Shown: one piece after another, positions 23,501 to 32,500 of the stretch
Numbering within the stretch: position 1 is the stretch's first letter
How the letters are laid out: the number at the start of each line of letters is the position of its first letter
Assembly: GCA_037379345.1 (NCBI GenBank)
Contig: CM074513.1
Span: 53,609,195 to 53,673,194, forward strand
Direction of reading: 5' to 3'
Source: Perna viridis
Lineage: Eukaryota
DNA: 64,000 bases
Notes under the pieces: generated by a model
What the model saw: the letters and a program-made list of their open reading frames with translations, nothing else
Told to the model about the DNA's origin: nothing
The model's database searches: none
Program-made: the position numbers and the translations under genes

Positions 23501-26500
23501 ATAAATTAGATATCAAGAAATGTGTCACTTAAAACTGTTATACACTTGGAATTTCCACTTTCTGTTACACTGAGTTGTACTCCCAGTTTTTAGTAATGGT
23601 CATCCTTAATGTTTGTAATTTCAAGATGGTTACATGAAAACTGAACAAGAGATTTTTTTCAAACTTTGCATAATTGTTATCAAAATACTGTAAAATAGAT
23701 TGAGTTTGGTTTTCTGCAAAATCCATTTTTAGTTCTCCAGTTATGCTGCTTTAAACTGTTGACAGCCCTTTTTTATCGTTCCGATATTTTATGTGCATAC
23801 ACTGTGTTACCTGACAACATTGCAGGGTATCAAATATGTTTCGTAGGATTTAGAGAAAATCATCAGCTGGCTACCCAAAACTTTAAGATGACATTATGGT
23901 AAATCTAGTTTTATCAATACTCTTGTTATTTAGTTAATCATACAAATGTAATATAGGAACAAGGTCTTTTCATACTCCTTGTAAACCAAAGTTTGAGGAA
24001 ATCCCTTTTCCTTCTATCTGTCTGTCCATCCATCCCCGTTCCATTTATGTACAACTTTTACTCAACAGTTTAATGCAACTAGATGAAATTTGATATGAAG
24101 GCTTTGCACCTTATGTGGATGCATAGAGAAAATTTTGTCAGCATATGTAAAAGATAAATAATTCAACTTAAGGATTTTACATTTTGCAAGACAATAACTG
24201 AATTTCAAATAAATAAAGGTTTGAAATTGTATCGTGAAGTTACATGTCACTTTCTTGACTTTCTCCTTGTACTCTATAAATGTATTATATCTCATTATTT
24301 CTCTGACAGGCTACCCTGATATACATGTATAATACAATATCTTCTCCTTTTGTCAGGCTACCCAGGTATATAATACAATATCTTCTCCTTTTTGTTTGCT
24401 GTGCTGCAGTTGGGATTTTTTGTTCCTACTTCTGATTATTTTAACATTTAGTTTTCTTAATATTGTTATATTCTTCACATGCCAGTTTCATTGCACAGCA
24501 ATTTTGACATGTTTTAGTATGCTAAATATGTATAATTGTGAGTTGCAGGCTACCATTACATTACATTGTTTCTTTACTTACACACTAGACTTTATTCACA
24601 CTATCTGAACAATATATAATAATAATATTCATTTTACAACTGAAATCTTTCTATTTAAATTTCATTTAGGTTATTGAAAGATAAAATGATAATAATGAGG
24701 TTTTTTTTTTTATTATTATTGAGATATATTAACTATACATTTATATTATGTATATGCCATGTTATGCTTCCATGTTTGTTCCTCATGATTTATGGAAGTA
24801 TAGAATTAACAAGGCGGTTCAATGTCTGTATGTTCATTTTGTTCCTGAACTAATGAAATCCTAATGGAATATGTATTAGATTAATTTATGTGTTCATTAT
24901 TTGTTCTCAGTATTACAAATAGAAAAGAACAGACTTGATTAATTGGTCTGCACTCTACGATACAAATAATCCATAACAAAACAATGTTTTGATTAGGAAT
25001 AAATCATTAATATTTGGACTGTCATCCATTAGAAGTTATACTATCAGGAACATTTCTAGTTTTTGAAAAGGTTATAGTCAACAACCAGGTTTTGGCCAGT
25101 TCACTCTTTTTATAAACAGTTTTACAATTTTTAAGTATAAACTGATGTAAACCAGTTTATTTTGTATAACCTGTTAGAAAATTAGACACATTCCTTAAAT
25201 GTTTGTTTCTCACCTAGGCAAGATAGGTTGTTTTTCATTAACTAACTTGGTACTGTGTCGTTAATGTTGATCGGTCCTCAGTTGGCAATTCAGATAATTT
25301 CAAACTAAATAAAGCTTTAATGAAGGAACAAATTTTAATGAAATTAAATTATAAGGATTGTTTTTAAGTTTTTAACCAAGTCCTAAGTTATTTATTTCTC
25401 ATAACCTGGTCAAAAATTAAAAACAATCTTTTAGGAAATATTGAGCGGTGAAAAACAAGTATAAGACGATCAACTTTCTATACGTTTAGTTTCTAGACAT
25501 TCCATACAAGAGTTGCCGCTTCCGGTGGCAACGTAGCAATTATTACATTACAAATTTCGGGAAATAATGTTACTGTCTTTTTCGTTCATAAATAAAAGAT
25601 AATTGGAACTTAGAAATAAAGAAACTATTCACAACACAATCCTTAGATGCAGTTGGACTGAAGTTTAGTACATTTATCAGTTATATAAAGATGTGCATAT
25701 TACCGTAGTAACAATTTAATGAAACAATTTTTTTTATTAAAAATTATTTTTGATATTTTAAGGATAGGATATCATTGGCATAATATCTTTTAAAAAAAAA
25801 CTAAAAAATTGTGAACTTGAAGTTTTGTTTAATAAAATTTGTACATTTATGCATTACTGGTGTCAAATAATGAAGTGCATATTACATTCTTTTTAATGTG
25901 ATAAATATTTTTGTTGATAACTTCATTTTCAACTTTTCTGACCATGTTGAAGTATAAATCATTTGAGGTTTATTACAGTGCTAGTATTTGCTAATTTTTT
26001 ATTAAATTCATACAGAATTAAGGAAGCAAAGAAGGAGAGAAGAACATGATTTGGATTGTAAGGGATATCATATACATATATATTTATAAGTTCATTTTGG
26101 ACAGCTAATGGTGTGCTATGTATATTGTTTAATTTAGAATAATAAACTTGTCCATACAGTTCTTACAGGTAGAATGTTGTTGTTGCTTGATATATGCTCA
26201 TTATTTATACTAATGATTGTATATGATATTGGTGCTAGAGTCATTTGTTGTCTTTCCATAACAAAATCACTTGTTTTAGTACGCCAACCAAACTAGTGTG
26301 ATAGGGCTAAAACAATGTTCATACTATATGTACTTAATATCTAGGTGATAATTCATGTGTCATAGGAGTATTACACATTTAATATTATTGCTCCAGTGAC
26401 CAGAATAGTAACCCTATAGATAATCAAATTGTTCAAAGGAATTTAAATCAAAGATTATGTTTAGTGTGAAAAATGAGACATAAAATCAGGACATGCATTA

Positions 26501-29500: not shown

Positions 29501-32500
29501 TTATTGAAACGTTGAGGGGTTTTTTCTGACACAAGAAAGAAAATGCTTTAGCATATCATTAGAATTGATGCATCATTTTTGCATTAATTGCATCCATTGA
29601 TGCGTTAAAAGCATCAGGGAATTTGAACATAATGCAGTTTGGAAGTTTTTATCTGCAGTTAACACTTTTATGCCTATCTCATCCATGTATTCTTTTGAGT
29701 TTCGCAGTTTTTGTTTAGAGGTAACTCCTTTCATGACATATGATAGAAGGGGGAGTAATCTGTGTGAATATTTATAGTTGCTTATTTTTGTTAATCATTC
29801 AGTATAAGATCTCCACGGTATGTATGTGCAGTGTTACTCAAAGGTGCAGGGGATGTTGTCAATACAACTCTTTTACCCTAAAAAATTGAAAATGTTTTTA
29901 TCAATTTGACATGTGTAATTGTAGTCACACCATCATCTTTGTTAGTCAGCCTTTTTGTTTTATAAGATCGTTATCTTTGGAAAGGCGGTAGAGTTATTAG
30001 ATCCTTGTTTTGGGTCAGTGGCATTGGCATAAGTCAGAAATGTATGATCCAAATTTAATTTACAATTAAGTATCTTAAAATGGGTTACTTTAAAAAGAAG
30101 TTGGCACAGTTTGTATTTTAATGTTGTCAGTCTACCAGTACACCATGACAATTAAAAAAAGAAGGACATGTATTTAGATAAATCTCTTGTAGTTTACAAA
30201 AATGTATTATTTTAACAATGTCTGCTTTAAAATCACAAACTAAAATTTTACTCAGCAGAAGATATAATAAACCATCCTTTAAATACTTTATGACATGTAT
30301 GCTGACACATGATTTCATACAAAATGTGGTTTGGAAATAACAATTTCAAGGCATTTTCATACATTTTACAGTAATTCCTAACTGTAAATAGAGCCCTATA
30401 ATACAATTGAAGTAACATTTTTAGGTTTTCTTTTCAAAATTTATTTAATTTTGGTGAAGCTGCTTTTATATGTCAACAAAAAGTTTTAAAAAAGTTGTAA
30501 AAATAGTTACTGACAAGATTGTCAAAAGTTTGTCACCTTGAATTAAATAAAAATCAGTCCTACTTTTAGTTATTCACTTGCTTTATAGACTAAAAGACCT
30601 CACTTGCCATCAGGCTAAATACATTATAAAACCATACAGATTGTAGGTCAGTAGGTAATAACTAATGTAGGTGTCAGTATTTGTATAGATTGTAGGTCAG
30701 TAGGTAATAACTAATGTAGGTGTCAGTATTTGTACAGACTGTAGGTCTGTAGGTAATAACCGATGTAGGTGTCAGTATTTGTACAGATTGTAGGTCTGTA
30801 GGTAATAACTAGGTGTCAGTATTTTCTGTATTCTACTTCAGTATAAAGTCAACCTCTTCCTGGTAGGTATAAATGGCACATGGTTGGTGATGGATGTACA
30901 AATGTATTTTATATTTTATGAATTGTAGACGAGTCAATCAGTACAACCTGATCCCTTAGTGACATAAAAAAGCACCTAATGTTGGTTATGATAATATTTG
31001 ATTTGTAGTCATGGTTCATCTTTTATTATGTGTTGCTATGACAATCATTTTAATCACATATACATTCTAATATCTTATGTATATAATCATTGAAAGTGCA
31101 TGGTTGTACAACATTATTTGCAGAATCATAAACATTCATGTCTGTATATCATTAGCATTTACTTCTTTTTATTTGAACTTATATCTGTTTCTTACTTTAA
31201 AAAAAATATCAGATAAATATAGTAAGGTCCAAAGCAGAAAAAATGGGATGTATTTGAATGTAGAATGAATCATTCTCTGTGGTTTTGCATTGAGCTTTAA
31301 AATTTAATTAAAATTAGCTAAACTGTAATACTAATGGGGATTTATTGATATTTATTTTCAGTAAAAATTCTGCATCCTTAACACCATCCTTACCTAGAAT
31401 TCCACAGAATGGCCGACCACCTAGTCCTCCACAACAGTCTGGTAGACCCAAGTCTGGTGCAAACAATAGACAAAGACAAGTCCAATCTTCAACAAGGAGA
31501 CCTAATGGACCAGAACAAAGCAAATCTGACAAGATGGTAATTTTGTTGTTTTTATACTCCCCCCTTTTCCTATTTGCAAAGTTGGGGTATATAGTGAAAG
31601 GGATATTTGTCAGTACATATGTCCTTCTGTCAATCTTTCTTTCCTTCTTTCTGTTAAATTGAAGGGACCCATTTTAATTCCATTATTCCTTCTACACCAC
31701 TGAATGGAATTGAATGAAACTTTCACAGAATATTTATTACATGTTACCATTGTGAAGCTCCTATTTTAAATTTTGATCCAAATCAATTTGGGGGTTTCAC
31801 ATAGGAAAACGTGGACTTTGTCATTTGTGAATATGGGGACATGTGGGGACCCAACCCCTTATCCTTTACTCCTCCTATTCCACTGAATGGAATTTAGCTT
31901 TCATAGAATCTTTATTTCATATTTCCATTGTACACCTCCTATTTTAGATTTTGTTTCGAATCAATTGGTGGGTTTTACATTGCAAATTTGGACTGTCATT
32001 TGTGAATTTGGGGACAGGTAGGGGTGGGGGACACCCCTCATCTGTAACTCCCCCTTTACCACTGAATGGAATTGAATGAAACTTTTACAGAATATTACAT
32101 TATGCCATCGTGCACCTCCTAATTTAGTTTTGGTCGAAATCAATATGGCAGTAAACTTTGGGACTTGATCATCAAGATATCCATAATACTACCCTCACAA
32201 GTTTAGAGTTCTTCATCCTTATGTGATGAATGGTTTGTTCTGGAATCACCCTTTTCACAACAAGAATGTGAAATTTTTTGCCAAAAAAAAACAAAAAAAC
32301 TTATACTGTATAATAAAAGTGACCATATTGTTTAATGCTTTCAATGATCATGTTCTTTGGTGAAGCAGTAGCAAAATCAGCAATGTTTGTTTATTATAGA
32401 AACTACATGGAATTTACACACTCTTAAAAAAGTTTCATCAAGGAGGCCTTAAATTGTGAACAACCAATCAGAATACAGTGAAAGGACATATGCTAATTTT

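Follow-up and report, generated by a model that had tools for sequence, protein, structure and literature searches.

The 64,000-nucleotide stretch of the Perna viridis genome studied here (GenBank assembly GCA_037379345.1, contig CM074513.1, positions 53,609,195 to 53,673,194, forward strand; called the window below) carries on its plus strand the KATNAL2 gene of this mytilid mussel, which encodes a LisH region, a disordered linker, and an AAA ATPase. KATNAL2 acts in cilia and in sperm development and is a human neurodevelopmental risk gene; to our knowledge, the regulation of its linker is poorly understood. We conclude, with a probability that we put at about 75%, that the two introns interrupting the linker-coding region contain a cluster of six, and probably seven, optional cassette exons of 9 to 42 nt that would be orthologous to the cassette exons of the KATNAL2 genes of Mytilus mussels.

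The gene was assigned to KATNAL2 because the peptide of its LisH exon (22983-23147) matched KATNAL2 proteins at 69 to 85% identity, several of them carrying the LisH family PF08513, and because 16 exon matches were colinear between the window and the KATNAL2 locus of Mytilus trossulus (L006). For the AAA ATPase part, window exons 33262 to 44407 were colinear with the M. trossulus gene in nucleotide alignments (79 to 89%), and the M. trossulus product carries PF00004 and PF17862 (the Pfam assignments are those of that product). The linker peptides of the window were almost identical to those of Mytilus KATNAL2 and place the species among the mytilids, near Mytilus but outside it. Together, the two linker introns measure 8.2 kb, with ~29% G+C.

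Protein searches, made with the single LisH exon of the window and then with the database proteins retrieved by that search, showed that the RefSeq KATNAL2 isoforms of Mytilus, oysters, scallops, and clams differ by short inserts exactly at the two linker junctions. The Mytilus isoform sets comprise X1 to X10 in both M. galloprovincialis and M. californianus, X1 to X8 in M. edulis, and X1 to X3 in M. trossulus. After the LisH exon, the Mytilus inserts are GYP (9 nt) and ERKQKKKEER(A/G)Q(N/D) (39 nt); before the KNSAS exon they are, in order, A (ASLSRCRSSL, 33 nt), B (MREHSFRARSSP, 39 nt), C (VRSP, 15 nt), and D (IRSLSLSA, 27 nt). These inserts are used in combination, with A+B+C+D, A+B+C, B+C+D, B+D, B+C, B, A, C+D, and the 39-nt insert together with C+D, with C, or with D among the arrangements found. 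We placed the Mytilus inserts on L006 as AG/GT-bounded exons and compared them with the window.

An initial annotation, made from the letters of the window alone, had proposed a cluster of four frame-preserving small exons or microexons in the linker introns (42, 33, 15, and 21 nt), and a cluster of this kind is supported by the Mytilus isoforms and their combinatorial use. Read on the sequence, all four segments lie where they had been placed. Each shows a pyrimidine-rich tract and CAG at the acceptor and GTAAG, GTATG, or GTAGG at the donor, spans a multiple of 3 nt, and reads without a stop codon in the phase of the host intron; the listed peptides are correct. Each has a cassette counterpart in the Mytilus RefSeq models, in the same order and phase and with a similar peptide (SFSRERRSP versus SFRARSSP, IRSP versus VRSP, and IKSTSS(C) versus IRSLSLSA(C) for the window and Mytilus, respectively). 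When two further exons described below are included, the window and Mytilus lengths (42/39, 33/39, 15/15, 21/27, 33/33, and 9/9 nt) differ in every pair by a multiple of three.

The splice signals and frames by themselves carry little weight. Full enumeration of both introns yielded 220 stop-free, frame-preserving AG..GT segments of 9 to 60 nt, ~20 of which have comparable splice signals, so that the pattern of the four segments is by itself no more than chance would give; the splice and frame criteria are necessary and not sufficient, and applied blindly they would return mostly false candidates. Because so many decoys pass, we dropped the sequence pattern as evidence. It is the Mytilus comparison, and only that, which singles out these four.

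For this comparison, each segment was scanned against the full 6.4-kb Mytilus intron, and segments with equally good splice signals served as decoys. All six of six segments had their best match on an annotated cassette exon, as did none of eight independent decoys; a ninth decoy matched A, but only through its position 20 nt from it. A 4-by-4 score matrix had its best scores along the diagonal, pairing the 33-nt exon of the initial annotation with B, the 15-nt exon with C, and the 21-nt exon with D. Reciprocal scans agreed with these pairings except in the case of D, which gave only a tie, and the pairing of the 21-nt exon with D is thus the weakest of the four.

The individual pairs differ in how much of the exon has been kept (a caret marks an exon boundary throughout). 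In the 42-nt exon, which encodes a charged RKQRRREE stretch, the acceptor acag^A and the donor GATT^gtaaggg are conserved with L006 8655-8693, and the two are reciprocal best places; the 39-nt Mytilus orthologue occurs in P0202 of M. galloprovincialis and in isoforms X1, X3, X4, X5, and X7 of M. californianus. The downstream of two 33-nt exons (29222-29254) had its best global score against B and its top scan places at B and C, and the reciprocal scan from B peaked on it; the two exons are colinear, and both terminate in ..CCTCG^gt, which gives S-P-(R). Where the downstream 33-nt exon starts is uncertain, because three further in-frame acceptors follow, at 29228, 29234, and 29237. A pairing of this exon with Mytilus SASLSRCRSSLG was tried and proved wrong, SASLSRCRSSLG being the orthologue of the upstream 33-nt exon (27967-27999). 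The 15-nt exon is identical to L006 15481-15495 at 12 of 15 nt (z score, 6.3; reciprocal best places), and exon C occurs in many Mytilus isoforms. The 21-nt exon and D each precede the 175-nt exon by ~500 nt, start with ATA.., and have a TG^gtaggta donor, and the top scan place was at D. Aligned with one another and with exon 31362 as a check for recent duplication, the three phase 2 segments of the initial annotation showed similarity at the level of splice sites only, besides TCTCCNCGgtatgtat, which is common to the 33-nt and 15-nt exons. Only ~30 nt separate the acceptor of the 21-nt exon from the end of a 49-nt minisatellite (30635-30811; 3.6 copies that match at 92%), and a change in the length of this repeat could affect the branch-point region of that exon.

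The set of four proved incomplete, as the two best-conserved cassette exons and a likely third, of 12 nt, had been missed. The only islands of the introns visible by BLAST against L006 are 24354-24459 and 27953-28045, and each contains one of the two. The first island holds a 9-nt microexon encoding G-Y-P, whose sequence with the donor (GCTACCCAGgtatata) recurs unchanged in M. trossulus; it reached a z score of 7.3 in the whole-intron scan. The M. galloprovincialis protein P0195, among whose sources is Logan, reads TSS^GYP^AGD. The second island holds the upstream 33-nt exon, which reached a z score of 9.4 in the scan and was also the top splice-signal candidate of the blind enumeration; its Mytilus orthologue, SASLSRCRSSLG, is present in RefSeq isoforms X1 of M. 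trossulus, X7 of M. edulis, and X1, X2, X3, and X8 of M. galloprovincialis. The probable 12-nt microexon (V-A-A-S), a lead only, was traced from the transcript of another mytilid (L007/P0197), which carries the 15-nt insert TAACAGCCGCCTCAG (V-T-A-A-S) at this junction: the 12-nt segment is the sole phase 1 AG..GT segment whose peptide fits a V-T-A-A-S search pattern. It forms a GC-rich patch in an AT-rich intron, its splice signals are weaker, and no counterpart was detected in M. trossulus.

Inclusion and skipping at the same junction are both on record in other genera. In Crassostrea gigas, transcript L005 includes GATTTCCAG (GFP) where the mussel microexon encodes G-Y-P, and transcript L003 skips it; the mytilid transcript L007 is a further case. 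The GFP-including form of C. gigas (P0170 versus P0184) was found on 180 transcript contigs and the skipping form on 26, the opposite of what the RNA of P. viridis shows (see below). In the window, the G-Y-P microexon and its flank lie inside a tandem duplication of ~45 nt (24307-24400), whose upstream copy, cag^GCTACCCTGATATACATgtataatacaatatcttctcc, no longer has the AG^gt junction; caggctacca occurs a third time near 24545.

Table 1. Constitutive exons and putative cassette exons of the KATNAL2 linker region in the window
Feature	Position	Strand	Basis and counterpart
Constitutive exon, end of LisH region	22982..23148	+	RNA contigs; 86% identical to M. trossulus exon; downstream intron phase 1
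9-nt cassette microexon GCTACCCAG, G-Y-P	24357..24365	+	Conserved with Mytilus; in phase 1 intron
Probable 12-nt cassette microexon TTGCCGCTTCCG, V-A-A-S, phase 1	25513..25524	+	Lead only; AG/GT-bounded
42-nt cassette exon, phase 1	26016-26057	+	Orthologue of Mytilus 39-nt exon ERKQKKKEER(A/G)Q(N/D)
Constitutive 52-nt exon	27479..27530	+	RNA contigs; aligns to M. trossulus exon; downstream intron phase 2
33-nt cassette exon (upstream)	27967..27999	+	Conserved island 27953-28045; matches L006 12905-12937; orthologue of Mytilus A
33-nt cassette exon (downstream), phase 2	29222-29254	+	Orthologue of Mytilus 39-nt exon B, MREHSFRARSSP
15-nt cassette microexon IRSP-(R), phase 2	29803-29817	+	Orthologue of Mytilus 15-nt exon C, VRSP-(R)
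21-nt cassette microexon IKSTSS-(C), phase 2	30842-30862	+	Orthologue of Mytilus 27-nt exon D, IRSLSLSA-(C)
Constitutive 175-nt exon	31362..31536	+	RNA joint from 27530; 81% identical to M. trossulus

To see which of these exons are used in P. viridis, we compared Logan assembled contigs from four presumed-RNA runs of four studies, of unstated tissue, with positions 25900-31600 (X1, X2, and X10 denote runs in this paragraph, and not RefSeq isoforms). In runs X1, X2, and X10, which come from three studies, a contig of depth ~40 joins 27530 to 31362 with GT..AG ends, and in runs X1 and X10 position 27479 is preceded in the contigs by the final 30 nt of the exon ending at 23148. Because the contigs thus join 23148 to 27479 and 27530 to 31362 directly, the dominant mRNA in the sampled runs skips every cassette exon. 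The loose end of an RNA contig behind 31538 matches 32588 onward, and the exon following the 175-nt exon begins near 32586. RNA contigs also break off at 25981, 26928, 27254, 30046, 30241, 30312, 30349, 30484, and 31574 into sequence from outside the window, which may reflect allelic insertions, repeats, or chimeric contigs.

Several observations weigh against optional exons in this species. No joint with any cassette exon was seen among the assembled contigs over 25900-31600, although such contigs drop minor isoforms and can reveal inclusion but not exclude it. The 42-nt and 21-nt segments were crossed (run X1), and the 15-nt segment was entered (run X2), only by colinear, unspliced contigs of low depth (2 to 5). 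In the scan, the z scores of the 42-nt, downstream 33-nt, and 21-nt exons (4.1 to 4.5) lie inside the range of the decoy maxima (2.9 to 5.4). For these three exons, the case is made by the location of the best match, order, phase and multiple-of-three lengths, and peptides, and not by score. The initial annotation had named conservation peaks in aligned introns as a check, and conservation above the surrounding intron was indeed observed: it is strong for the G-Y-P and upstream 33-nt exons and weak in score for the original four, but the best matches of the latter still fall on annotated exons where those of the independent decoys do not. A contig from a more distant mollusc genome (L004) aligned only at two upstream exons and was uninformative for the introns.

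These points bear on two other explanations. One is that the segments are relics of the same ancestral cassettes as those of Mytilus, which this lineage would have ceased, or almost ceased, to include. Skipping of all the exons is the only form seen in P. viridis, and three exons have diverged markedly from their counterparts in both sequence and length, as such a history would predict; yet all four original segments retain splice sites, pyrimidine tracts, open frames, and lengths that are multiples of three, which would be unexpected for relics in an intron whose surrounding sequence can no longer be aligned. We regard this as quite improbable. The other explanation is that they are chance pseudo-exons, AT-rich introns holding many frame-keeping AG..GT stretches that are never spliced in. 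The 220 enumerated segments with their ~20 decent sets of signals, the lack of inclusion joints beside dominant skipping in three studies, and the modest Mytilus similarity of three of the four segments would all fit; against it, the four and two others match annotated Mytilus cassettes in colinear order, with conserved phases, multiple-of-three indels, and related peptides, as the independent decoys did not, and we consider it about equally improbable. A transposon origin of the segments is ruled out, as the candidate regions are single copy in the 723-Mb genome of the species itself. We therefore favor optional cassette exons, which P. viridis presumably continues to include at some stage or in some tissue.

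Under this preferred reading, the phase 1 intron would contribute cassettes of 9 nt (G-Y-P), 12 nt (V-A-A-S, the lead), and 42 nt (the charged stretch), and the phase 2 intron would contribute cassettes of 33, 33, 15, and 21 nt. Splicing could then lengthen the linker stepwise, by up to ~55 residues, leaving the folded LisH and AAA domains untouched, and inclusion would change the charge of the linker and its number of Ser-Pro and Arg-x-x-Ser sites. The role of the exons may be to adjust how the linker is phosphorylated or how it binds microtubules or partners.

The initial annotation had gone further and suggested a splicing-tuned phospho-switch. The phase 2 exons are rich in Ser and Arg, with a net charge of +1 to +3 and one to four Ser/Thr residues each, and in two of them a final S-P is followed by two bases that complete an Arg codon with the next exon. 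At the level of sequence, joining the downstream 33-nt exon or the 15-nt exon to exon 31362 does give S-P-R-K, as had been noted, and joining the 33-nt exon to the 15-nt exon gives R-S-P-R-I-R-S-P-R. The S-P-R^K junction recurs in Mytilus isoforms (RVRSPR^KNS and RARSSPR^KNS), and its retention between genera is the best support for the phospho-switch idea, although kinase regulation of the linker inserts is itself pure conjecture. The RKQRRR basic cluster of the 42-nt exon looks like a possible nuclear-import or tubulin-binding patch. A broader proposal, which we think rather unlikely, is that bivalves, and perhaps molluscs as a whole, have in their KATNAL2 linker an ancient microexon program regulated by tissue or stage, in which the junction-dependent S-P-R-K and R-x-x-S sites and the basic exon resembling a nuclear localization signal would switch localization or microtubule affinity. 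If so, this mussel would have retained the complete complement of six or seven exons, and the program would represent an invertebrate counterpart of the vertebrate neuronal microexon programs.

Elsewhere in the gene, a 21-nt insert near the C terminus, IEYNRLG, distinguishes Mytilus isoforms from one another; it lies between ..EKNEPG and ELHLRLD (L006 36757-36777), and searching the corresponding window intron (43290-44274) with a simple peptide pattern gave no counterpart. KATNAL2 is flanked upstream by leucine-rich-repeat-like open frames (1166-1381 and 3748-3999, plus strand) and downstream by ankyrin-repeat-like open frames (48872-49153 and 50122-50355, minus strand), and a 382-residue open frame occupies 10845-11990 on the minus strand.

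This kind of feature, combinatorial cassette microexons in a disordered linker, is already known, and orthologous exons are already present in the RefSeq models of sister genera. The models in Mytilus, oysters, scallops, and clams contradict the suggestion of the initial annotation that gene predictors would miss such exons. Our literature search found no paper with both “microexons” and “bivalve.” What is added here is the mapping in P. viridis, which would give the gene model of this species seven alternative exons; the three exons among them that had been missed; and the conservation of the S-P-R^K junction between genera. Combinatorial splicing of six or more tiny exons, together with S-P-R^K in two mussel genera, offers a concrete and testable handle on the regulation of the linker.

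In canonical katanin p60 (KATNA1), phosphorylation of the N-terminal region lowers severing activity. Katanin p60 and mouse KATNAL2, with their phosphoregulated N-terminal or linker region, resemble the mussel protein in having a disordered region upstream of the AAA domain. The localization of mouse KATNAL2 is changed by aurora B inhibition and by ERK1/2, and its reported phosphosites, Tyr5 and Thr7, are at the N terminus and thus outside the linker (PMC11461529), whereas the kinase sites in mollusc KATNAL2 are predicted motifs only. Mouse KATNAL2 also has several isoforms, which differ by larger pieces (PMC5705150).

Oysters, scallops, and clams are closer, with short frame-preserving inserts at the same two junctions and at least 24 isoforms in C. 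gigas. Their inserts include GFP or GHP behind the LisH exon and, ahead of the KNSAS exon, Ser/Arg-rich peptides such as RNNKD, SIRRRTESGHSG, SMRHSASSSAILLH, and SLTRRVKSGSQS; beyond the G-aromatic-P microexon, they are not clearly alignable with those of mussels. Oysters have further inserts after the equivalent of the 175-nt exon, and none was found there in the window. The closest system is Mytilus KATNAL2. Three exons differ from it in length by 3 to 6 nt, sequences have diverged, the 12-nt V-A-A-S candidate lacks a Mytilus counterpart, and it is in Mytilus that inclusion is documented by RefSeq models; the two genera nevertheless share the same gene, the same two introns, phases, and exon order, related peptides, the same S-P-R ends, and the same S-P-R^K junction.

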